A DNA stretch of 59,536 nucleotides, filler included, from Dugesia japonica (Eukaryota): the NCBI GenBank assembly GCA_001938525.1. It is 5 parts of 5 records of this genome, joined end to end, with 100 filler letters (N's around TTAATTAATTAA, not from the genome) between each part and the next. Parts side by side here need not be neighbours in the genome. Positions count along the whole stretch, not along the records: positions 35,957 to 46,565 come from MQRL01630092.1; 4 more parts are not named here. One strand, given 5' to 3'. Every line of letters begins with the position of its first letter. The stretch's first letter is position 1. The notes below the pieces were generated by a model that saw nothing but the letters and a program-made list of their open reading frames with translations, was not told where the DNA came from and made no database searches. This document shows positions 8,752-46,665 of this stretch, piece by piece. The position numbers and the translations under genes were made by a program.

Positions 8752-10493
8752 CTACTATCTATTGTATCTACTCTAATCTTCTGGTTGATGATAATGCTAA
8801 TTATCCTAGGTAAAATATTTCCACCAAAATCGTTTCAGATATAATTAGATTAAAAAATCCATAAACGAAATTTTAAAGTCAATTTAATTCTCTACAGTGA
8901 TTTGTATATTTCCATTTAGAATATTGGCTAAATAAATAATATGAAACTATTGCCCGAGTTTATTTATTTCTATTGAAAAATGAACTGACAAAAAGAGTTT
9001 TGTGGAAAAACTGTTAAAATAAGTGTTAGAAAACTTTCGTTTTAAAATTTAATAACTTTTACATAACCGTTAAATAAATAGTTTTAGGATTCAATCAAAC
9101 AAAAATTGTTAAGATATATCCTAATCACTCAAAAAGTGTTCCAATTTCACAAGTGTTATAATTTAAAAGATTATGAAAGTTGGATGAAAATATATAATTT
9201 TTCAATTTTTAAAATCTACTTAGGTGCCTCGGGTTTATCCACCAAAGCGTTAGCTGTTAGGTTTTATAAATACTTTCGTGGATGAAAGAAATAGCTCAGG
9301 CCATACGAAATTTTTCAATTTTATAGAGTATATTTAAATTATTATTGTATATTAAAATTTATTTAATATTTTATTTTGGCATTTCTTCAAATATCAATTT
9401 TGAAATGATGGATTCAAATTATAATTAAAATTATGGAGCATATATTAAAATATATTATGGAAGATTTTAAATATTATAATATTAAATTAGATCTTTTTAA
9501 AATATATATGAAAATGTATTTTGTGTATGTATAAATATTCGAATATCTTGAGGTCTGGGTTATTTTTTAAAAATTTCTTTCATTAAAGTATTAATAAGAG
9601 TTAATTTGTTTGAATATTCATATTTTTTAACTTTCAACAAAACCCAAAATCATTTATGGTTAAATAAATATTTATGAAGATTTGTGATATTGTTAGCCAA
9701 ACTAATATTATTGTATTTTTTTTAATTCAATAAATAAAATTCATTTGCAATGTTCATAATATTCAAGTTATTTGAGTTCGTAAAAGTTTAGGATTGATAC
9801 GCTATTGTAAGAAATTTTTAATTCGTTTTTGTAGGAAGTGAGGCTGCTGTCATTTTAAATGTACAATTGAGAATTTATAGTATTAGATTTGATAAAACAA
9901 ATAGAACAGATCAAATAAATTAACAGACTTTTCTTTAAATTTAGAATAATTCAATTTTAAATAATAATATAAAAATAAACAAAAATATTATTGGTAAAAT
10001 ATTCAAAAAAAATTTTTTTAATTATTATAAAAAAATTGAAAATAATTATAAAGGAACTATTTTAGTCTATTCTCTCGATTTCAGGGGATAAAATTTATTT
10101 TTTGACTTAAAGTGTCCAAATCTTGCAGGTAAAATTATTAAAAGAATAATTGTTGGACGTAACCATGGATCGTTTTTCAGAATACATTGAAATATAAGCT
10201 TCGATAAAATGTTTTTTGTTGTTGATAATAATTCTTATTATTAATTAATTTTTATTATTAATTATTTCTTGTTATTAATTAATTCTTACTATTGATAAAA
10301 ATAATTATTATCAAAAACAAAAAAAATTGATCAAAGCTTATATTTTAATATATACAGTATATATGATTAAAATTATTACATTATTCATTATTAATAATCT
10401 CACAATATAATTATTAAAATATTGTAAATATGAATTCCACTCGACTGATGTCCAGTATACCGAAATTATAAAATATACAAATGTTTTTCTTAC

Positions 10494-35856: not shown

Positions 35857-36388
35857 NNNNNNNNNNNNNNNNNNNNNNNNNNNNNNNNNNNNNNNNNNNN
35901 TTAATTAATTAANNNNNNNNNNNNNNNNNNNNNNNNNNNNNNNNNNNNNNNNNNNNATTTTGTAGTAATAAGATTGCACAATTTTCTCTAAATTCTTCTA
36001 TTTTAAAAGATTTTAAATTACATCTATTTTTATCACCTTCTTTAAATGAATTATAAAGTTGCATTCTAAATGTATCTGGTTCATTTATTCNNNNNNNNNN
36101 NNNNNNNNNNNNNNNNNNNNNNNNNNNNNNNNNNNNNNNNNNNNNNNNNNNNNNNNNNNNNNNNNNNNNNNNNNNNNNNNNNNNNNNNNNNNNNNNNNNN
36201 NNNNNNNNNNNNNNNNNNNNNNNNNNNNNNNNNNNNNNNNNNNNNNNNNNNNNNNNNNNNNNNNNNNNNNNNNNNNNNNNNNNNNNNNNAAATTTAGGTG
36301 GATCAAATTCATTTAATTCAGGTAATTCTTTAAATGTATTTCTTTCTAAAAATTCTAAATTATCAGGATTTGCAATAACAACTAAATT

Positions 36389-36652
36389 TTATGGTTCGAT
36401 AATGCCAAATTTAGTCAGCGAAGTTTCTTCCCCTTCTTCCTTTAAACTTTCACAATCGGTTCTTTCGGAGGCCAGCGAAGTGCATTCATCTTGATCACTG
36501 TCAGATTGTCCGTAGGCCAGCGAAGTGCATTCATCTTCTGAACTAATTAAATTATCAAGTGTTATTATTAAATCTTTTAATTCTTTTTTTAACTTTTCTC
36601 CATTCTTAATTTTAGGTAAAACATTTTCAATTTTACATATAACATCTTCCAT
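36389..36652 (-). CDS. Small acidic hypothetical protein of element B with DECTSLA repeats
   Basis: ATG preceded by TATATAAGAA; a 23-bp direct repeat encodes DECTSLA twice. Confidence 0.5.
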   Translation of the reverse strand: MEDVICKIENVLPKIKNGEKLKKELKDLIITLDNLISSEDECTSLAYGQSDSDQDECTSLASERTDCESLKEEGEETSLTKFGIIEP

Positions 36653-36859
36653 TTCTTATATAAATAATTTAAATAACACGCAATGCGTGTCGAAACCCAG
36701 TTTCTGGTTTTTAGATTCCAAGTTTAGCACGCATTTCAGAAATAACTTTATTTTGATTTTCAAGTAACAATTTTAAATTATTAGTGTCAGTCGCTTTGCT
36801 TGCATGTTTATGTCCAGATATCAAATCATGAACATCAGAAACCATCTTTTTCGAGATCA

Positions 36860-38332
36860 TCAGTTCATCATCCGTAAGTATTTCATCATTAACTGCTTTC
36901 TGTTGAAATAAAAAAATAAAAAATAAAAAGGTGGATTTACAGAATAAGGTAAATAATTATCAATTAAATGTTTTATTTTTATAATGTTAAATGTTTCAGA
37001 TAAAATATTAAATTTATCAATAAAATATTTATGAAGATAAGGTTTTATCTTTTCAAATTCTTTAGTTAGATCTTCACATTTTTTACTGTTATCTAACATT
37101 TCTCTTATGGCTTTATTATTTAAAACTTTAAATAATAAATCAATATTGTTAATTTGTTTATTATTTAATTTTGGTTTCACTAATTCATATTCTTCTTTTA
37201 ATTGTTCAAATGTTTCCGCTGTTTCACTGATAACACTTAATTTTTCTAACCAGAATGCTTTTGGTAAAATTATTTCAATAAAATTTATTTTTGTTTCATC
37301 TATAATTGCTCTAAAATTTATATAATTTTCTTCCATATCAATTTTAAATCCATGAATGTTTTTTTTATTAACTTTAATGACAAAATAAAAGGTTTTAGAT
37401 ATATAAAAATAACCACTTATATCAACATAAATTCTTTCATTTATCTTTGTGGTTAAATAAATATAAAAATCATTTAAAATATAAAAATGTTGATTTTCCA
37501 TTAAACATTCTTTTCTTTTAAAATCTAAATAGGTAACATATTTATCCATAACAGTAAATTGTGGAAGATCCATAAAGGAAGGAAGATCGCTTTTATTACA
37601 AAAAATTGAAAATATTATTTTTTTAGTATCAAGAAAAACATATGGTAAATAATTATCAATTAAATCTTTTATTTTTTCGAATGAATTAGATTTAAATAAA
37701 ATGTTAAATCTATTAATAAAATTTATATGTAGTTTAGGTTTTATTTTATCATACTCTTTAAATAAAATTAAATGATTTAAATATAAATCAAAAGTTTNCT
37801 TATCCAAATTATCATTTAATTTTTCAATTTCTTTTTTAATTTTAGATGAATCAATAGACAAATCTAATTCTTTTAATTTATTAAGTAGATCACTTTTTTT
37901 ATATGGAAATAGTTCAAGTTTTAATCTTTTAATCTTACTTGTGATATTATCAAATGTTTCTTGGTTACAATTCTTTGTTAATTTTTGAATATCAACATTT
38001 AATTTTTTAACATCAACATTTAAAACTTTTAATTCGTTGATTTTAGATTCTAAATATAATTTGTTAGCTGTAAAACTATCAACTTTTAATAATCTATTGA
38101 AAATTATTTCGTGTCTTTCTAATTTTTCTTCAAGAGATTTTATATATTTTAAATTAACTGCATCTTGTAGATCCTTGGGATCATCTTTTATTTTTAAAGA
38201 TGTTATTGTGTCACCTGTTTCATTTACAAATTTATTTTCATTTTGAGCATCTGAGTTTTTGATTTTAGCATTTACATTTTTCAATATTTCTGTTGAATTA
38301 CCAGAATCAGCTGTAGCACCAAACTTATTCAT
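36860..38332 (-). CDS. Putative fibre/structural protein of element B
   Basis: MNKFG start; FVNETGDTI...DPKDLQDAVNLKYI (DAVN..Y fibre-like motif); coiled coil; three copies of a KE(Y/F)..(I/V)KP.L....I..(F/I).IL repeat. Overlaps the protease stop. Confidence 0.6.
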   Translation of the reverse strand: MNKFGATADSGNSTEILKNVNAKIKNSDAQNENKFVNETGDTITSLKIKDDPKDLQDAVNLKYIKSLEEKLERHEIIFNRLLKVDSFTANKLYLESKINELKVLNVDVKKLNVDIQKLTKNCNQETFDNITSKIKRLKLELFPYKKSDLLNKLKELDLSIDSSKIKKEIEKLNDNLDKXTFDLYLNHLILFKEYDKIKPKLHINFINRFNILFKSNSFEKIKDLIDNYLPYVFLDTKKIIFSIFCNKSDLPSFMDLPQFTVMDKYVTYLDFKRKECLMENQHFYILNDFYIYLTTKINERIYVDISGYFYISKTFYFVIKVNKKNIHGFKIDMEENYINFRAIIDETKINFIEIILPKAFWLEKLSVISETAETFEQLKEEYELVKPKLNNKQINNIDLLFKVLNNKAIREMLDNSKKCEDLTKEFEKIKPYLHKYFIDKFNILSETFNIIKIKHLIDNYLPYSVNPPFYFLFFYFNRKQLMMKYLRMMN

Positions 38333-38780
38333 CTATTTCTTTATATAAAGATTTTTCAACGAGAACATAAAGTGACTTCATTTCAGATATTATATCCTCG
38401 AACTTATCTTCTTGAATTTTATATAAAAAATAAATACATAAAATTCCACATATTTCAGTGTTAAAATGTTGCACTTGAATTTCATTATATTTCGTGACAT
38501 ACTTCGCGATTTCTATTAAAGGTTTTAAACCAAAAGAATCAAAATAATATCCTTTATGATAAAATGTCCAATGTGTTCCATTTTGATTTGAATTTTGATA
38601 ATTAAAAATATAATTCATCGAATTTATCAGTGTAAATTTCTTTCCGTTGGTCAGCGTAGCGCATTCATTTTTCATGTAAATCTCAAGCCGAAGATTAAAA
38701 AAGTCTGATATCGAATATAAATCAAAATTTGTTGTTGTAGAAATGCCAAATGTTTTTAAAAAATCTAATAAACAATACAT
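38325..38780 (-). CDS. Adenain-like (C5) virion maturation cysteine protease
   Basis: N.QNSNQNGTHW, YFDSFG, Q.Q......CG..C: intact His/Asp/Gln/Cys catalytic set. Confidence 0.93.
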   Translation of the reverse strand: MYCLLDFLKTFGISTTTNFDLYSISDFFNLRLEIYMKNECATLTNGKKFTLINSMNYIFNYQNSNQNGTHWTFYHKGYYFDSFGLKPLIEIAKYVTKYNEIQVQHFNTEICGILCIYFLYKIQEDKFEDIISEMKSLYVLVEKSLYKEIDE

Positions 38781-38840
38781 TTATTAAAAGTAAAAAATCG
38801 TCTTCATTTACAACAGTATGATTAAAAAAAATATCTTAAA

Positions 38841-39512
38841 ATGACAAGTTTATTTCCACCTGAAAACATTAAAACTCTTGAAGATATTTATAAATTTGTA
38901 AATTATAAAAATAGTGTTTGTGATATACTAATGTATATTGAAGAAAAAAAAGATGATCTTAATTTTATTGAATATAATGACATTACAAATTTTAAAGATA
39001 TTTATAAATATGTAAATTTAAAAAATAATGTTAATGATATAAAAAAATATATTGATAAAAAAAGATTTGATATTATTTATCTATCTGCTGATATTTTCAA
39101 AGCTCTTGAAGATATTTATGAATATGTAAGTTTAAAAAGTGATGTTTCTGAAATAAAAATGTATATTGAAGAAAAAAGAAATAATCCTATTAATCCATTT
39201 GATAAGCCCAAATATTTAAAAGTTTTAAATAGATATTTTTCCGAAAAAAGAAGAACACCTTTGACGAATGATGAAATAAAAATTTATCAAGAAGCATTTA
39301 AATATTTTATTTTTAGAAGAAAAAATCCTGTTATTTCACGTGAAGAAGTATTTAATTTTATGTGTTTTAAAAATAATGGGGGAAAAAATGAGTTCGTTAC
39401 TGTTAAACCTGAAGGCGCTAACTTATGTGGCTGCGCTAAGGTGGACTACGTACAAACAGATATTTTTGAATGCACTACGGAATCTGATATTTTAAAGTCG
39501 ATATTTTCTTAG
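38841..39512 (+). CDS. Hypothetical protein with three ~39-aa internal repeats (only plus-strand gene of element B)
   Basis: LEDIYKFVNYKNSVCDILMYIEEKK / FKDIYKYVNLKNNVNDIKKYIDKKR / LEDIYEYVSLKSDVSEIKMYIEEKR; open 223-aa ORF. Confidence 0.7.
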   Translation: MTSLFPPENIKTLEDIYKFVNYKNSVCDILMYIEEKKDDLNFIEYNDITNFKDIYKYVNLKNNVNDIKKYIDKKRFDIIYLSADIFKALEDIYEYVSLKSDVSEIKMYIEEKRNNPINPFDKPKYLKVLNRYFSEKRRTPLTNDEIKIYQEAFKYFIFRRKNPVISREEVFNFMCFKNNGGKNEFVTVKPEGANLCGCAKVDYVQTDIFECTTESDILKSIFS

Positions 39513-40205
39513 ATGAGCTAAAATTGTAATTGTTTCTTGGTTAAAATCTATAGTGTTAAAATTTTCATCTACNNNNNNNNNNNNNNNNNNNNNNNNNNNN
39601 NNNNNNNNNNNNNNNNNNNNNNNNNNNNNNGATGGTCTTTCTACTATTTTATATCCAAATGGAACTGTGTTTATTGGAAATGAATATAAAAGATTAATAT
39701 TTTTTGTTTCCTTGTTATTTGTTGCATAATTACCTTTAACAATGTTACATGTCACATTTATCGCGTTAGAATTTATAATGTTAATTTTTTCAGAAGAATA
39801 ATAATTTCCAGGTTCATATTTTCCTGGTTTAAATCCGAGTATTGTATGTAAAAATGATTTGGAATCAAAACTTATTGTGGTTTTAGTTTTGATATTACAT
39901 TTAGATGTTGCAGTGTCAGGTGTAATTTCTAGATATTTTTCTAATCGATTTGACATTTCTTTTACTTCATATGATCCTGGTTCTAGAGTTATGGCTTTGT
40001 CTTCCCCTTCTGCCTTGTTGCCCTTGTGGTTTATTATGGCTTTGTCTGTATGGAATTTATTATTTAAATTGTTGATATTAAAAATAATATTGTAACATGA
40101 AAAATATAACAATCCAAGTTCATATTCTGAATCTAATTTTATCGGATAATCTAAATTTATTTTTAAATCTTGTTCTGTACCAACTACTAAGAATTGATGA
40201 GACAT
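39492..40205 (-). CDS. Minor capsid protein (penton, single jelly-roll)
   Basis: PIKLD..YELGL..F..YN.IFNI...NNKF, I.L.PGSYE, ILGF, I.V.CNIV.G.Y, F....P.GYKI.E.P, VDEN...IDF..E.I....HLR: the Maverick/adintovirus penton pattern. Confidence 0.88.
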   Translation of the reverse strand: MSHQFLVVGTEQDLKINLDYPIKLDSEYELGLLYFSCYNIIFNINNLNNKFHTDKAIINHKGNKAEGEDKAITLEPGSYEVKEMSNRLEKYLEITPDTATSKCNIKTKTTISFDSKSFLHTILGFKPGKYEPGNYYSSEKINIINSNAINVTCNIVKGNYATNNKETKNINLLYSFPINTVPFGYKIVERPXXXXXXXXXXXXXXXXXXXXVDENFNTIDFNQETITILAHLRKYRL

Positions 40206-40209
40206 TTTG

Positions 40210-41151
40210 TTAAGATTTAAAATATTTAGTTTTATATTTTTTATAAATAATATCAGATAATAAACCTTTAGATTTTAAATTTTTACATACATTCTTGATT
40301 TCAGATGCGAGATTATTATGTCCAGATTTTACAGCCGAAATTAGTAATGTTAACTTTTCAAATAATGCAATTGGGTTTTTTACCTTTATGGGTTGTGCCT
40401 TTATGGGTTGTGCCTTTATGGCAGTACCAATTGTACTTTTTGTTGCCCCTATGGTTTTTTTTGCCCTTGTGGTTTTTGTAGGTGGATTTATTATTGCTTG
40501 TAAAAATCTAATATAATCATTAGTAACTGGTGAATTTTTTACTATATCATTTAAATATATTGTAATATAATTTTTCATTTCTTCATCATTTTCTTTTATT
40601 TTTTCTTTATGTCCACAAATTAAATCCATAATTTTATCTGAATATTCATGAATTTTTCCATTGACTGAAAAATGTGGTTTATTTTTAATATCAAAGAAAA
40701 ATATAACCACATTCCCTGAAAATAATATTCTTAAAAATTTCTTACCAATTTCAAATTCCGCATAAGCAGGTAAAGGTTTTATTTTTCCTTTTATTACATT
40801 AGTATTAATTTTTATATCAGGATTAAATGGAGTTGTAGTTTCTTCTGATAATAATTCAGCAAGTGCGCCATCTTTCAAAGTTAATTCTAATTTATATTTA
40901 TTTTTATTATAAGTTTTATATTTTTCTTCTATAGTTTCTGGTTTTATGGGTTTGTCTTCGTGGTTTATTATGGTTCTTTGTTTGTTGTCATCCCTTAGTT
41001 CTAATTTTTCTAATGCAGAGATTGTTGGTAGTTGTAAAGTGGATAAGTTACTTTGTAAAGTATTATAATCAAGAATTTTACTAGAAAAATAATTATTATA
41101 TTGTTCTTGAGATTTAATTAATGCTTTTAATTCTTTAATTCTTTTTTCCAT
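40210..41151 (-). CDS. Conserved invertebrate-Maverick protein of unknown function
   Basis: C-terminal NP..L.EKL.LLI.A.KSGHNN...EI......L...G.. motif recurrent in Mavericks; AQPIK tandem repeat. Confidence 0.7.
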   Translation of the reverse strand: MEKRIKELKALIKSQEQYNNYFSSKILDYNTLQSNLSTLQLPTISALEKLELRDDNKQRTIINHEDKPIKPETIEEKYKTYNKNKYKLELTLKDGALAELLSEETTTPFNPDIKINTNVIKGKIKPLPAYAEFEIGKKFLRILFSGNVVIFFFDIKNKPHFSVNGKIHEYSDKIMDLICGHKEKIKENDEEMKNYITIYLNDIVKNSPVTNDYIRFLQAIINPPTKTTRAKKTIGATKSTIGTAIKAQPIKAQPIKVKNPIALFEKLTLLISAVKSGHNNLASEIKNVCKNLKSKGLLSDIIYKKYKTKYFKS

Positions 41152-41223
41152 TAGCTCTTTTTTCGCGCAGCTCTTTTGTAAAGATTTAATATGTACGTAG
41201 TCCAGCTACATAAAGTTAGCGCC

Positions 41224-41826
41224 TTATTGTTCATCTTCGTCTTCATCATCTTCGGTTTCGGTTTCATCTTCGGTTTCATCTTCAATACCTTTTCCAGATT
41301 TATATGGATTTAAATAAATACCTTTTCCATGTTGAATTATGCGAGTTCCGGATTTAAATTTTTTAGTTAAACTTTTAAATTTAGGATCAATATTTTTTAA
41401 ATATTTATGTATTGCAGTGCCTTGATATGGATTTAGAAAAATACCACGGCCTTTTTCGCCTTTATGGTTTTTAATTCCAGTTCCTGTAGTTGTAACTGTT
41501 GGAGTTTGTTTGTTCGCTTCGCTTAGTTTGTTAGCTTCTACTTGTTTTTGTAAATCAATTAATTCACCTTGTATTTTTTTATTAATGACATCTCTAGAAT
41601 TTGCAACTGTACCTGCAATTCCAGATGCAGCACCAGTTGCAGTTGCTAATGCTGCAATTATTGCTGGTATTGCAGCTAGAAATGCAAAACCGCCTTCTTT
41701 ACTTCGCATTTTTGCTTCATCTTTAACTTTTTTAGAAATATAATAATTTTTACCATTGATCTTTACAGATTTACATTTTCTAGAATTTATAATTTTAATT
41801 AATTCTTCTTCTGTTGCTTCTGACAT
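41224..41826 (-). CDS. pX/mu-like core or membrane-lytic precursor protein
   Basis: KEGG|FAFLAAIPAIIAALATATGAASGIAG resembles adenovirus pX (GG|FLP.LIPIIAAAI.A.PGIA); repeated GxG|I sites; acidic tail. Confidence 0.75.
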   Translation of the reverse strand: MSEATEEELIKIINSRKCKSVKINGKNYYISKKVKDEAKMRSKEGGFAFLAAIPAIIAALATATGAASGIAGTVANSRDVINKKIQGELIDLQKQVEANKLSEANKQTPTVTTTGTGIKNHKGEKGRGIFLNPYQGTAIHKYLKNIDPKFKSLTKKFKSGTRIIQHGKGIYLNPYKSGKGIEDETEDETETEDDEDEDEQ

Positions 41827-41886
41827 TTATTATATTAACATTTTAAACAAGGAGTGCATTTAGTATAACGAGAGCAAGGAGTGCAT

Positions 41887-44800
41887 TTATTGAGAGCAAG
41901 GAGTGCATTTATTGAGTCGATTGATTTTATCTAATCTTAAATGCCATTGTCCACAATTACAGAGATATTGATTTCCATGTGGCCATGTTTTTGTTCCATC
42001 ATCTTCTATGATTCTTTTATCATCAAATGCCATTAGAGCTATTTTCTTTTGTTCTTTTATTTCAATTTCATGATTATCTGATTTTAATGTATAATTTGTT
42101 CCGTAGATTATTTTCTTTGGATCATTTAATACTGAATCAAAATCTGACATNNNNNNNNNNNNNNNNNNNNNNNNNNNNNNNNNNNNNNNNNNNNNNNNNN
42201 TTGATGGGCTTCAGTGTATGAATAAGCATAAGATTTTGCTTTTATAAAATTAGCTTGTGTTATTTCAGAATTAGGTTTTTCATCTTTCATCTGGAAAAGA
42301 TTATCTCCAAGTAGACTTTCTAATTTTAAAAGATTATCTCTTTTTTTAATTTCAACAAAGATTGCATCAGTATTTTTTATTATCAATGGAAATCCACAGT
42401 TAAATGTGCCATCTTGGGTTTCAATGTCGTATACATCTTCTATGTTTTCTCTTAAAAATCTTACAGATTGGACATTAGTAGGAATTTCATCATCTAATTG
42501 TAAAAAACTAAAACAATTATTTTTTAATGGTATAATAATTAAATTCATTCCTAAAGATGTACCTTTATAATAAGCTTTAGATAAAGATATTTTATCTTTA
42601 AATATTTGTCTAGTAAAAGGAAAATCTTTATTATTTGGTTTAAATATTTTTTTATGTAATAATTTAGTTTCATGGGTTAAATCTGTTGGTTTAATATGTT
42701 CACATTTATCATTTAATAATGAGTGATCTTCTGTTACATCAACAATTCCAAGATGAGTTCTTACTCTATAAATCTTTTTATTTGTTGTATGTTTTATTAC
42801 TTTTTTTAATTTAACGAATCCACTTTTAGTCCAAATTTCAAGGTTTTTAGGAAAAGAATAATATTTGTTATCATGATAATTCTTTATATAATTTTGATTT
42901 ATTTCTGAAATCTTTTTAATTATTACTTTATAATTTTTCCTTAGAATCACCGGAGTGTCATGGGTTACACTATCGGTGTAATGAATTTTATAATTATTTT
43001 CAGAAATCAACGGTTGCATTTGTTCATATATAAAATTATACATTACTTGTTTTGCATGTTCGAGGATTGTGAATCCTTTATATGGAAATTTATTATATTT
43101 TAATTTAGCTTTTATCATTTGCATTGCTGCAACTGTGGCTTCATTTGAATCATTTATTGAGAAGATTTTAGATGATTTAAATGTTGGTTTAGCTGCAAGT
43201 CTTTGGTATGCTTTGTCAGTATCAACAATTTCTATGTTACATCGATTTCTAATATTTTCAAGGGTTTTGCCATAGAAAGCATTTAACAATAATTTATAAA
43301 TATAATCTCCGAAGACATCTTTAATTCTTTTAGATTCTTTTCTTAGAGATATTAATTTATGAACATAATCTTTAAACCATGTAGAGGTTTTCATTTTAAT
43401 TTTCTTATGTATTTTTATAAGTTTCATTCCAAGTTTTAAATATAGATCTAAAGTTGATCCGAGACATACATAATTTTTCTTGTCAAATTGATTTAATGTT
43501 AGTTTTATATTATCTTTTGATAGTTTTCTATTAAATGATTTTTGATAAGGACCTAACATATCTTCTGTAATATTTATTCTTTCTGGTGCTAATGGGAAAT
43601 ATTTAGTTTTATCGTGGATCTCTTTTGGATATTCAAGGTCAACTTCATATATAAAATTCATATTATCATCTGAGATTTCATAAGTTAGCTCGTTACATTC
43701 GTGGAGTTCGCCTGTTGGAAGTGGTCTTGTCATGCAACTTGCATATAAAGAGTTTTCATCAATATATTTTATAAATGTTTCTTCTTTCCAATCTACTGGT
43801 GGAATTTTATTTTTTATTAATGAAAATAATATCTCAGAGACTTGTGTTTTATTTAATCGTCTGTTGGTGCCAAATCTAGGATTTGATTGATTATTGACGT
43901 TCATTACTTGACGTTCACCTAGAACACCTGAATAGCCACCCCGGATTCCAGATTCAATTGTTAAGAAAAGATCATAAGTTTCTTGTTTCGCATATTTAAG
44001 TTTTATATTTGCATTTAACATTCCAGTTTCCCATGAATATCCTGGTGCTGAATATGAATAACAAGGATCTAGTTGAAGAAGATTATTTAAACATGAATTT
44101 CTAAAATTTTCTAAGAAGTCAGTTAGAATTAGAACATCAAGTTTCATGTAGTGTAGCATGTAATCCCAGAGATTTTTAAAATCTAAATAATCTATTAAAA
44201 ATTTATCATATTCATCATCAGATATTCCCTTTTGTGTTAGTGTATTAAAGAAATCATTTCTAGTTGGTGTTCGTTTTGATTTTAATAATTTTTCTACTTC
44301 TTGTATAGTGTCGCCTTTTATATATTCATATGGAAATGAGATTTTTTTAGGTCTTAAATTGAAAGATGTTAATATTGGATATTTATTGGAAGATGTTAAT
44401 AAATTACCCATTGTTTCTATAGATGTGAATGGTAATAGTCTTGCTGAATCTAGGAATTTAATATTTTGAAATTGAAATGAAATATAATTATCTGATGTAT
44501 GTGGAATTATCTTTTTTACTTTTCCTGGAAATCTTGTTAGTAGTTCTCTGAAAAATAAATGATTATCATAGCCGGATGCGTTATGAAAATAAAATGGAAT
44601 GAATAGATTTATTACACTAAAATCATATAAATTACATTTTTTATGTGAATAACCACGGAATTCATTTGTGAAATGATTATGATCTATAACTGGATCTTCG
44701 GTTATTATTGGTTTATCACAATAATAACATAATTGATTATTATACTTTGGATATGTGCCTGTGAATTCTTTTATTAATTTATTTTCTTTTATATCTTCTA

Positions 44801-46286
44801 TTTTATTATTAGTGTCATTTAAAAATTCAAAGAATTCTAGATAAATGTTTTCACCTGTGAAACAATAATATTTAGATTCTAAGAGATGTTGATGTTCACT
44901 GTGAAGATAAATTCCTAATGATAATGCTTTTTGTTTTTTCTTTGAATTTGTATATGCTTCAAAATCACCTATTAATATGAAAGGTAATTTATTTTTCTGG
45001 TAAAATTTATTAAAGAAATAATAATCTTTATATTCAAACACAATGTTATTTGGTCTGTGATTAATACATGCTTTTTGATGTTTTATTAAAAGCGGTTCAT
45101 TGGAATAACAAGTCATGCATCGTATGTATGGATATTTTTTATTTTTGTTTCTTGTGAAAAATACATTTAAATCTCGACATAGAACATATTGATCTTTATA
45201 AATTAATAAGTTGCATTTATTTTCTTCTGGTGAAGGTTTTGCTGTATGATGCGAAATGTATAATGGTTCGAGTTTCTTGTTAGCATTCACACCGAAAACA
45301 TTTATTTTATAATTATTTAATTTCTCGAATTTATGTATATCACCGATGTTCATTGGAAAATTAAAATCTGATTTTAATTCTTCTAAATATGGAATGTAAT
45401 TAGAAACACGTGTTGGATTATCAAGAATATGTTTATGTGCTAGAATTGAATATAGAAAACATTTATTATCTTTATTTTCTATGTTAATTACACCTTGTAT
45501 TTTAAATGGTAACTTTTTATATGTTGCACCAGCTTTTGATTGATATTTATTTAAATATAAAGTATAGTCGTTAATATACAACATTGACCAACCTGAACCT
45601 TCAAGATCTTTATCTTCAATATGTTTATTTAAATCATTAAATATTTCATTGACAGCGGTATTAATTTCGGATTTAATTAAAATTGTTTTATTAAATGAAG
45701 ATGAATATAAATCTCTTTCGGTATCTTCTTTTGAATATCTACATTTTACAACCATACTTACAATTGCCTGATTTACACATTTAAAATATTTCATAATAAT
45801 TTGTCTTATTTCATTTTTAAATACATTAATCATTCTAATTTCAAAATCATGTTTTTCATAAACATCATAAAACATTTCAACTTTAGAATTTAAATAATAA
45901 GTTATTTCATGTTTTTTATACATTCTTAATGCATCTCTAATTTCTGGTGAATAATCAATTGCTTCTTCACCTGGAAGTTCATCAAAATTTAATTTAATAA
46001 CTTTTTGTTTGTGACTTAAAGAATTAAAATGTGCTCGAGCGTGATTTTGTTTTTTAAATACTTTATCACAGATTTCACATAATAATAGGAAAATTTCATT
46101 GTTTCCACAATTATATGAATTTAAATGCGCCTTTAAATCACTTTCTCTTTTAAATGATTTATTACATTTATTACATTTTAATGTTGCATCTTTATAACAA
46201 GTTCTAGATGCGAGATGCCCATTTAAACCTGCTTTATTTTTAAATATTTTATTACAATTATCACATTTAAATANTTGTGTTGTCAT
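41887..46286 (-). CDS. polB: Protein-primed family B DNA polymerase with N-terminal zinc fingers, Endo VII-like domain and an intein
   Basis: GSGW, N.DNKCF, GDFEA (Exo I), FHNASGYD (Exo II), YMKLDV (Exo III), GIRGG, YIDENSLY (A), KLLLNAFYGKT (B), YTD-intein-TD (C). C-terminal ALMAFDDKR...T.PHG lies in ORF 41887..42150; the frame change falls in the N gap 42151-42200. Confidence 0.96.
42372..42971 (-). mobile_element. 200-aa mini-intein in pPolB motif C
   Basis: Block A SVTHDTPVIL, block B VRTHLGIVDVTEDHSLL (TxxH), block F VYDIETQDGTF, block G PLIIKN followed by Thr+1. Removing it restores HYTDTDAIF. Confidence 0.93.
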
Positions 46287-46370
46287 CTTTTTTATATAGA
46301 ATTTATTTAATCATAGAGGGTAAAAAAGAGGATATTTTGTAATTTAAGAGGATTTATTATATAATGCCAC

Positions 46371-46548
46371 TGTGACATTTTTGCATTTCACATTTTGCAT
46401 ACGACATTTTTGCATACGACATTTTTGCATTTTGCATTTTACATTTCACATTTTACATAGGAAATTTTTGCATTTCACATTTTGCATACGACATTTTAAA
46501 ATACCCCCTGAATCCAAATCGTGTTATATCTATTACTGATATACTACA
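46371..46548. repeat. Subterminal repeat array and candidate terminus of element B
   Basis: Repeated cattttgcatacga / catttcacatttt units (46371-46497), a C5 block, then ...atactac (rc GTAGTAT, close to the AGTAGT Polinton end). Confidence 0.6.
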
Positions 46549-46665
46549 TTAACTCAAATTCATTTNNNNNNNNNNNNNNNNNNNNNNNNNNNNNNNNNNN
46601 NNNNNNNNNTTAATTAATTAANNNNNNNNNNNNNNNNNNNNNNNNNNNNNNNNNNNNNNNNNNNN

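Follow-up and report, generated by a model that had tools for sequence, protein, structure and literature searches.

What is the 200-amino-acid (aa) segment that splits the catalytic motif C of a DNA polymerase gene in a Dugesia japonica assembly, and where did it come from? The gene lies in a 59,536-nucleotide (nt) stretch of assembly GCA_001938525.1 (here called the window), of which we analyzed positions 35957-46565 only, a piece that comes from record MQRL01630092.1. The original prediction for this locus proposed that an intein of giant-virus type had entered the active site of a protein-primed polymerase. We conclude that the segment is very probably a class-1 mini-intein of the pol-c allele, situated in the protein-primed DNA polymerase of family B (pPolB) that belongs to a Polinton/adintovirus-like element, acquired horizontally, and with its deeper reservoir in giant-virus DNA polymerases of family B (PolBs).

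The position of the insert is clear from the translation of positions 42342-43001 on the minus strand, which reads ..ENNYKIHYTD / SVTHDTPVIL ... FPLIIKN / TDAIFVEIKK. The insert itself occupies positions 42372-42971 (-), is 600 nt long, and corresponds in frame to residues 1106-1305 of the open reading frame (ORF) at 42126-46286 (-), where it falls between the D and the T of motif C. Its N-extein side, HYTD (42972-42983, -), aligns with the ..YTD or ..YGD of relatives and ends in the first catalytic Asp, while its C-extein side, TDAIF (42357-42371, -), is located by translation and motif position and starts with Thr+1, which would act as nucleophile in splicing; the residue after it is the second catalytic Asp. 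The two Asp residues of motif C bind the catalytic metals in family-B polymerases. In a MAFFT alignment, seven intein-free pPolB relatives, including a Leptopilina boulardi protein, are contiguous at this site (..xD/TDS..) and have no residues in the gap, and three other pPolBs hold 337 to 350 residues at the same point. Because the intein-free relatives run contiguously there, the insert is an addition between the Asp-bearing halves of motif C, and these relatives set the boundaries of what we describe below as a 200-aa mini-intein with a Hint domain and no homing endonuclease. Among 67 relatives for which phmmer mapped both intein ends, 63 have the intein at YGD/TDS, and the insertion site of the window polymerase matches the definition of the pol-c allele (D/T of motif C, YxD/TDx). 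Translation and intein-free relatives agree in this respect with the in-frame 600-nt insert, splitting motif C, that had been proposed.

Both the sequence and the predicted fold of the insert identify it as an intein. The NCBIfam model TIGR01445 (intein_Nterm) matched it with an E value of 2.5e-9 and a score of 38 bits, compared to a cutoff of 24.5. When the insert was searched with phmmer against 1.84 billion cluster representatives, we obtained 1,492 matches at an E value of ≤1e-3 and 696 at ≤1e-10, the best at 8.6e-34, and almost all of these homologues are internal stretches of proteins of 1,000 to 2,300 aa. The best sequence match in PDB is NEQ068, the N-terminal half of the split Nanoarchaeum polymerase intein (E value, 1.3e-3). 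An AlphaFold2 model of the insert, built from a 38-row alignment, has a mean predicted local distance difference test (pLDDT) score of 95.5 and a predicted template modeling (pTM) score of 0.90; its sole dip in pLDDT, to 78, is at residues 111-120. With this model, every one of the 50 top-ranked Foldseek matches in PDB is an intein or a Hint domain (best E value, 1.8e-7), among them the TFIIB, RadA, Aes123 PolB1, VMA, DnaB, and DnaE inteins. The profile score of 38 bits and these 50 fold matches bear out the assignment to the Hint/intein fold.

We then counted residue conservation in 182 to 190 mapped family members, with the pieces of the intein aligned apart. Ser1, the block A nucleophile (42969-42971, -), is S in 99% of the family. 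In block B, T80-E-D-H83 (TxxH; 42723-42734, -), the Thr is found in 99% and the Asp and His in 100% of 182 sequences, and T80 and H83 are invariant in the 38-row intein alignment. Blocks F and G, V180-Y-D182 ... K199-N200 (42372-42434, -), contain Y181, D182, and N200, each conserved in 99% of members. The insert also retains T6 (98%), P7 (98%), and H61 (100%), and Thr+1 is kept in 189 of 190 family members. At all 20 listed positions that are conserved in at least 90% of the family, as well as at Thr+1, the insert has the family majority residue. The class-1 residues named in the original prediction (Ser1, TxxH, the block F Asp, the terminal Asn, and Thr+1) are therefore all present, in states found in 99 to 100% of the family. 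The prediction had also pointed to a Lys in place of the penultimate His. The Lys is there, as Lys199, so the penultimate His of block G is indeed missing, but this His does not define the family, and the supposed oddity falls away: Lys is the commonest penultimate residue in the family (99 of 190 members, versus 83 with His; 54% versus 42% when the intein pieces are aligned apart), so Lys199 is no deviation and can be ruled out as a defect. G188 is likewise the commonest state of the family at its position.

From these residues, a conventional splicing pathway can be proposed. The polymerase would be made as a precursor in which the two Asp residues of motif C are 200 residues apart. Ser1, aided by the block B Thr and His, would carry out the N-O acyl shift, and Thr+1 would take over the N-extein by transesterification. 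Cyclization of Asn200 would release the intein, and an O-N shift would restore ..YTD-TDA.. and, with it, the catalytic site. Since motif C would be whole only after splicing, we propose that DNA synthesis of the element depends on protein splicing.

To which inteins is this one related? Among 207 matching proteins with a mapped intein start, the host is an RNA-primed PolB (rPolB) in 159 and a pPolB in 2, and 46 were left unclassed. One of these 46, the database protein P0002, is a pPolB by its Pfam match, about a dozen are type II topoisomerases, and the others are mostly fragments; most unclassed fragments show ..YGD ahead of the intein. In IMG/VR, 159 loci encode a relative, and in the best 80 of these 159, the host is an rPolB in 72 and a pPolB in none. 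Many of the best 80 contigs are named GVMAG, and one close rPolB host sits on a gene-dense contig (L005) with PCNA, PIF1, SNF2 helicases, and YqaJ. The top matches in BFVD are the PolBs of Pithovirus LCPAC302, Marseillevirus LCMAC201, and Megavirus courdo11, followed by those of a phycodnavirus, Klosneuvirus KNV1, Heterosigma akashiwo virus 01, and Pandoravirus hades. These host counts support membership of the insert in a family that is found overwhelmingly in giant-virus-type PolBs. On this point, too, the original prediction holds, as the top BFVD matches are PolBs of nucleocytoplasmic large DNA viruses (NCLDVs) and 72 of the best 80 IMG/VR loci are rPolBs.

The type II topoisomerases (P0156, P0173, P0193, and some nine others) carry the intein in the Toprim motif (..TDQD/S..). 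Topoisomerase II is a second, nonallelic target, in which the intein again lies behind an acidic metal-binding motif.

Within this family, the closest relatives of the insert are not in giant viruses. Three pPolBs in the databases, P0002, P0004, and P0019, have inteins at the same site, of 350, 337, and 346 aa, respectively. With the pieces of the intein compared apart, the insert is 61% identical to the P0002 intein over the first 108 residues and 67% identical over the last 52, and piecewise identity is 41 to 55% for P0004 and 35 to 47% for P0019. By distance, the nearest whole inteins are those of P0002 and P0004, both pPolBs, and the best rPolB inteins are 36 to 41% identical to the insert over the whole intein. 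In a neighbor-joining (NJ) analysis of whole inteins, the insert and P0002 are grouped with 88% bootstrap support, the addition of P0004 has 52%, and all four pPolB inteins together have 55%. An NJ tree of the short C-terminal intein piece alone was saturated and uninformative.

The exteins tell a different story. The N-exteins of the window polymerase and P0002 are 21% identical over 408 aa (E value, 0.03), and the exteins of P0002, P0004, and P0019 are 21 to 31% identical to that of the window polymerase. Intein-free pPolBs, among them Mytilus edulis and M. galloprovincialis proteins, share 71 to 79% identity with the P0002 extein, and proteins from Cacopsylla, Diabrotica, Psylliodes, and Lytechinus share approximately 37%; the intein is absent from all 119 P0002 extein relatives listed. 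For the window polymerase, the nearest exteins (36% identity) belong to intein-free pPolBs of Polinton-type loci, and wasp and aphid proteins are 27 to 30% identical. Intein and extein histories thus disagree, and therefore the intein has moved horizontally between very different pPolBs. The window polymerase, too, would have acquired it horizontally, as the closest intein known is in the very different mussel-type Polinton pPolB. We consider it likely, but no more than that, that inteins of giant viruses gave rise to those of pPolBs in a single entry; the immediate source of this one was probably a second Polinton and not a giant virus. GC content at third codon positions (GC3) is 11.5% in the intein and 14.2% in the extein, and because the intein value is as low as that of the extein, nothing marks the intein as a recent arrival. 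Incongruent trees and horizontal movement had been anticipated, and both stand; what does not is the expectation that the nearest neighbor of the intein would be found in a giant virus, since that neighbor is P0002, a pPolB, at 61 to 67% identity.

Alleles with and without the intein occur side by side in one group of relatives. The P0019 family consists of 136 near-identical polymerase genes on contigs of 0.1 to 1 Mb, and the P0019 cluster contains intein-plus alleles of 1,537 aa and intein-minus alleles of 1,186 to 1,193 aa, with exteins that are 97 to 98% identical. In the intein-minus alleles, the intein is missing to the exact residue, and intein-plus and intein-minus alleles differ at a few residues flanking the site, in a way that resembles co-conversion tracts. 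The P0019 element is of Polinton type, with an rve integrase and a double-jelly-roll (DJR) capsid gene. The flank of one P0019 family copy (L088) contains RT_RNaseH, gag aspartyl protease, zf-CCHC, and DUF1759 domains and a weak match to a Pao-type peptidase, and this debris of a long terminal repeat (LTR) retrotransposon is no more than a hint of an animal genome. The intein-plus and intein-minus copies that the original prediction proposed to look for among relatives exist.

The insert differs from the other three pPolB inteins in that it has no homing endonuclease. The inteins of P0002, P0004, and P0019 all contain a LAGLIDADG/Hom_end domain (PF14528 and PF05204). By blastp, residues 1-109 of the insert match residues 1-113 of the P0002 intein, and residues 114-200 match residues 265-350; an alignment of the inteins confirms that approximately 150 residues are absent between positions ~109 and ~114. 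The point at which relatives hold this ~150-aa LAGLIDADG domain is at 42630-42647 (-), and the domain is cleanly missing there. Mini-inteins (≤260 aa) account for 94 of the 190 members counted, and the majority of these 94 have a viral PolB as host. Because it has no homing endonuclease, the intein is now a fixed passenger that is unable to home, and we propose that it is retained since any loss that was not exact would ruin motif C.

Which kind of polymerase, and of element, carries the intein? The main polymerase ORF, 42126-46286 (-), encodes 1,386 aa, matches PF03175 (DNA_pol_B_2) with an E value of 1.5e-19 in Pfam, and shares 36% identity, over 962 aa, with the pPolBs from the Polinton-type loci L002 to L004. 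Exonuclease motifs Exo I to III and polymerase motifs A, B, C, and KxY were all located. Because a downstream 87-aa ORF matches the C-terminal end of the PolBs of relatives, the pPolB gene as a whole spans 41887-46286 (-); its last ~85 codons are in a different frame from the main ORF, with one frame change that falls inside masked letters, and we found no in-frame stops elsewhere in the gene. The N terminus has three C2H2 zinc fingers (PF12874, PF00096, and PF13894 at residues 6-93; 46008-46271, -), an unusual decoration for the terminal-protein region of a pPolB, and one relative, P0274, also matches PF00096. Between Exo I and Exo II, there is an HNH- or endonuclease-VII-like insert (44631-44690, -) with a weak match to PF02945 (E value, 0.014). 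The same domain is clear in polymerase relatives (P0004; E value, 3.3e-8) and is common to most relatives of this pPolB clade, and the insert recalls the HNH insert described for nematode and oomycete pPolB2.

Related polymerases lie in recognizable elements. A DJR capsid gene and an rve integrase are found beside the pPolB in L001 to L004, L007, and L088, an A32-like ATPase is also present in L002, L003, and L007, and two further genes of the window are common to L001 to L004. The L002 to L004 elements (from approximately position 9500) have 23 to 28% GC inside flanks of 35 to 44% GC at three places of one assembly. Because these elements are AT rich within flanks of higher GC content, AT-richness is a trait of the element lineage, and the 24.7% GC of the analyzed piece was ruled out as a pointer to an AT-rich host. 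A Pfam search of the L002 to L004 flanks yielded nothing informative. As for the host, the only pointer to animals comes from relatives (Mytilus, Leptopilina, and an aphid), the nearest relatives being from metagenome assemblies; the piece itself is without host flank, and the host of the element may be an animal. Giant-virus-type inteins need no protist host: Iridoviridae are among the viruses with polymerase inteins, and work on invertebrate iridoviruses has been cited (Green et al. 2018, PMC5784728).

Several other explanations of these data have to be weighed. The intein could have jumped directly from a giant-virus PolB into this pPolB in a co-infected cell. Its site and family are the same as those of NCLDV PolB inteins, the presence of the family in NCLDV-like topoisomerase II indicates relaxed target choice, and the DNA core GAT/ACWGAT is common to rPolB and pPolB sites. 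We nevertheless consider a direct jump unlikely, since the two nearest inteins are in pPolBs (P0002 at 61 to 67% and P0004 at 41 to 55%, compared to 36 to 41% for the best rPolB), and since pPolB relatives still have LAGLIDADG, which makes spread from Polinton to Polinton the simpler last step. Moreover, the DNA flanking the site is identical at only 13 to 19 of 30 positions, with little in common beyond the core, and the GC3 values give no sign of recent arrival. Of the transfer claim in the original prediction, the horizontal movement is retained and the direct step from giant virus to element is not, and co-infection was an inference that the data do not support. It is also conceivable that the insert is what is left of a Hint domain that has decayed and no longer splices, and that this copy of the element is dead, with motif C split and the polymerase inactive. 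The missing homing endonuclease, the missing penultimate and block F His residues, and a possible frame change in the last part of the gene would fit such decay, which is frequent in genomic Polinton copies. We judge this to be quite improbable, as every residue conserved in at least 90% of the family is kept, K199 and G188 are the commonest states, the intein model is very confident (pLDDT, 95.5), and 94 of 190 family members are free of endonuclease, most of them in viral PolBs; in addition, the polymerase motifs are complete, and eight neighboring ORFs have stayed open in AT-rich DNA, in which stop codons readily appear. An assembly chimera, in which a fragment of a giant-virus intein was joined into an unrelated polymerase gene, is a general possibility with short-read assemblies, and nothing more speaks for it. 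The join is codon exact and in frame on both sides, the same architecture is found in three independent pPolBs of other samples, and composition is uniform across the junctions, so we give this explanation practically no credence.

A further alternative leaves the nature of the intein untouched and places the piece outside an animal chromosome, as a free or episomal adintovirus-like virus or as part of a non-animal organism in the sample. Host flank is absent from 35957-46565, the polymerase gene comes last ahead of an end rich in repeats, an arrangement seen in linear genomes, and the ORFs are intact. Exact look-ups of the proteins of the piece in sequence collections gave no match. The nearest extein relatives (36%) come from metagenome assemblies, and the P0002 contig is 5.3 kb long and ends 107 nt before the gene. 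In contrast, relatives are integrated and multicopy (L002 to L004, at three places with flanks of 35 to 44% GC), the P0019 family has 136 members on contigs of up to 1 Mb, the L088 flank has BEL/Pao-like LTR debris, and relatives with a named source come from Mytilus, Leptopilina, Metopolophium, Diabrotica, and Lytechinus. We regard a nonchromosomal origin as a serious contender, at somewhat less than an even chance. A broader form of our own reading is that splicing-competent pol-c inteins circulate among animal-associated Polintons, seeded by giant-virus polymerases and entering metazoan nuclear genomes via integrated copies, with passage between polymerases as different as the mussel-type and the HNH-bearing pPolBs; this we advance only tentatively.

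The interpretation of the insert as a horizontally acquired pol-c mini-intein of giant-virus ancestry also has to bear several points that weigh against it. The Pfam model Intein_splicing did not match the insert significantly (E value, 0.079), and the block F His, found in approximately 40% of the family, is absent, with G-T in its place. We infer splicing of this intein from its residues and from the presence of the family in essential viral polymerases. The family itself was sampled by similarity to the insert. The direction from rPolB to pPolB is read only from numbers (4 versus hundreds) and from an unrooted NJ tree, in which the monophyly of the four pPolB inteins has 55% bootstrap support. 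Because the frame change falls in a masked run, the intactness of the polymerase gene cannot be fully asserted. Finally, because capsid, ATPase, and integrase genes are missing from the piece, the label "Polinton" is based on the type of polymerase and the two shared genes.

The piece as a whole has a GC content of 24.7%, a coding share of 89%, eight ORFs without internal stops, and five masked runs (199 nt, 58 nt, 50 nt, and two single N's). Rfam and tRNA scans of the piece gave no match, nor did a PHROGs search with the eight neighboring ORFs. There was no Pfam match to an rve-type integrase, a DJR capsid protein, or an A32-type ATPase in 35957-46565, which ends ~10 kb from the polymerase end, and these genes may lie beyond the end of the piece. 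The two genes with homologues in Polinton-type loci are a 151-aa ORF at 38325-38780 (-) and a 237-aa ORF at 39492-40205 (-). The first is 32 to 46% identical to a gene of L001 to L004, with H, D, Q, and C invariant in that order, and may well encode the cysteine protease of the element, possibly an adenain-like one; it had no Pfam match and no PDB sequence match, and its single-sequence model has a pLDDT of 38. The second is 28 to 30% identical to genes in L001 and L002/L003, its L002 counterpart adjoins the A32-like ATPase gene, and this position and kinship make a minor capsid protein a possible function. Neither the protease-like nor the penton-like ORF had a match in PDB when searched as a profile.

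In the noncoding end past the polymerase start, an array of 14/15-nt units (positions 46374-46504, no strand assigned) contains five overlapping copies of a GACATTTTTGCAT-like unit and is possibly a terminal or origin repeat; a repeat search of the piece, which holds one end of the element, did not find an inverted-repeat pair. The polymerase gene region has at its 3' end a 22-nt unit, present as two perfect tandem copies and a diverged third (41843-41913). Other repeats lie within ORFs. A 223-aa ORF (38841-39512) has three tandem 114-nt (38-codon) repeats at 38860-39189 (+) that are 76 to 78% identical, and a 490-aa ORF (36860-38332, -) has an internal duplication, with a 37-nt direct repeat 696 nt apart; "IDNYLPY" segments recur in the translation of the latter, which has no family match. 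A 200-aa ORF (41224-41826, -) encodes a hydrophobic Gly/Ala-rich stretch and an acidic tail, with a weak match, under the cutoff, to adenovirus protein X/mu (PF05829; E value, 0.012).

What appears to be new here is the pol-c intein family in a protein-primed PolB; pol-c inteins in RNA-primed PolBs were already known. The finding widens the known range of a single intein allele to both sides of the deepest division among family-B polymerases, and it would be a molecular record that giant viruses and Polinton/adintovirus-like elements have been in contact. The P0019 family, with its natural intein-plus and intein-minus alleles and 97 to 98% identical exteins, offers a system for studying, by sequence comparison alone, how homing proceeds between repeated elements in a eukaryotic genome. 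An intein in a protist Polinton polymerase may already have been mentioned in the early literature. Our full-text literature search, from which the founding Polinton papers were out of reach, turned up no account that explicitly describes a Hint intein in a Polinton/Maverick pPolB, and the word "intein" is absent from the text of the adintovirus paper. The earlier claim of no prior description holds to that extent, and it has to be qualified by a report that ascribes homing-endonuclease insertions in polinton pPolBs to "intein invasions" (PNAS 2024, PMC11161782). A review that lists 67 viral DNA polymerase inteins states that metazoan nuclear genomes are intein free (Green et al. 2018, PMC5784728). 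If inteins do circulate among animal-associated Polintons as tentatively suggested above, there would be true inteins in metazoan nuclear genomes, against that statement.

Among known systems, pol-c inteins are textbook material for archaeal and giant-virus RNA-primed PolBs. The Mimivirus intein at YGD/TDS has been described as the "pol-c allele," common to archaeal PolI and the split NEQ068/NEQ528 (Ogata et al. 2005, PMC549080), and this is the same position as that of the insert, as originally predicted. The insert shares with the Mimivirus and other NCLDV PolB inteins the D/T insertion point, Ser1, the terminal Asn, and Thr+1. Its model superimposes on the PolBs of Pithovirus LCPAC302, Marseillevirus LCMAC201, and Megavirus courdo11 with template modeling (TM) scores of 0.87 to 0.88 at 27 to 30% identity, and whole-intein identity to rPolB members is 33 to 41%. 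The hosts differ, as the window polymerase is a protein-primed PolB (PF03175) and the Mimivirus and NCLDV hosts are RNA-primed, Pol-delta-like PolBs. A further difference is that the insert lacks LAGLIDADG, although half of the family is without it as well. Archaeal pol-c inteins and N. equitans NEQ068/NEQ528 have the same site and are only distantly similar in sequence; their hosts are thermophilic archaea, and the N. equitans intein, unlike this one, is trans-splicing.

Other comparisons come from virus-like elements of eukaryotes. HNH and VSR nuclease inserts have been described in Polinton pPolB2 (Jeong et al. 2023, doi 10.1101/2023.08.22.554363). Like the window intein, these inserts are derived from mobile elements and lie inside Polinton pPolBs, and the window polymerase also has an HNH-like insert; unlike the intein, they have no Hint domain, are at other positions, and are kept in the mature protein. 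Intein-bearing virus-like DNA polymerases have been reported on nuclear scaffolds of Klebsormidium, Tetrabaena, and Hondaea, and viruses have been proposed as intein vectors (Gallot-Lavallee et al. 2023, PMC10710043). Those genes resemble the one analyzed here in being viral polymerases with an intein, and theirs are lodged in eukaryotic chromosomes. They are from algae and a labyrinthulomycete, and the excerpted text of that report does not name the type of virus or mention Polinton, Maverick, or a protein-primed polymerase. The closest counterparts are the pPolBs of P0002 (mussel type), P0004, and P0019, all unpublished database entries, which have the intein at the same site as the window polymerase but retain the ~150-aa LAGLIDADG domain.

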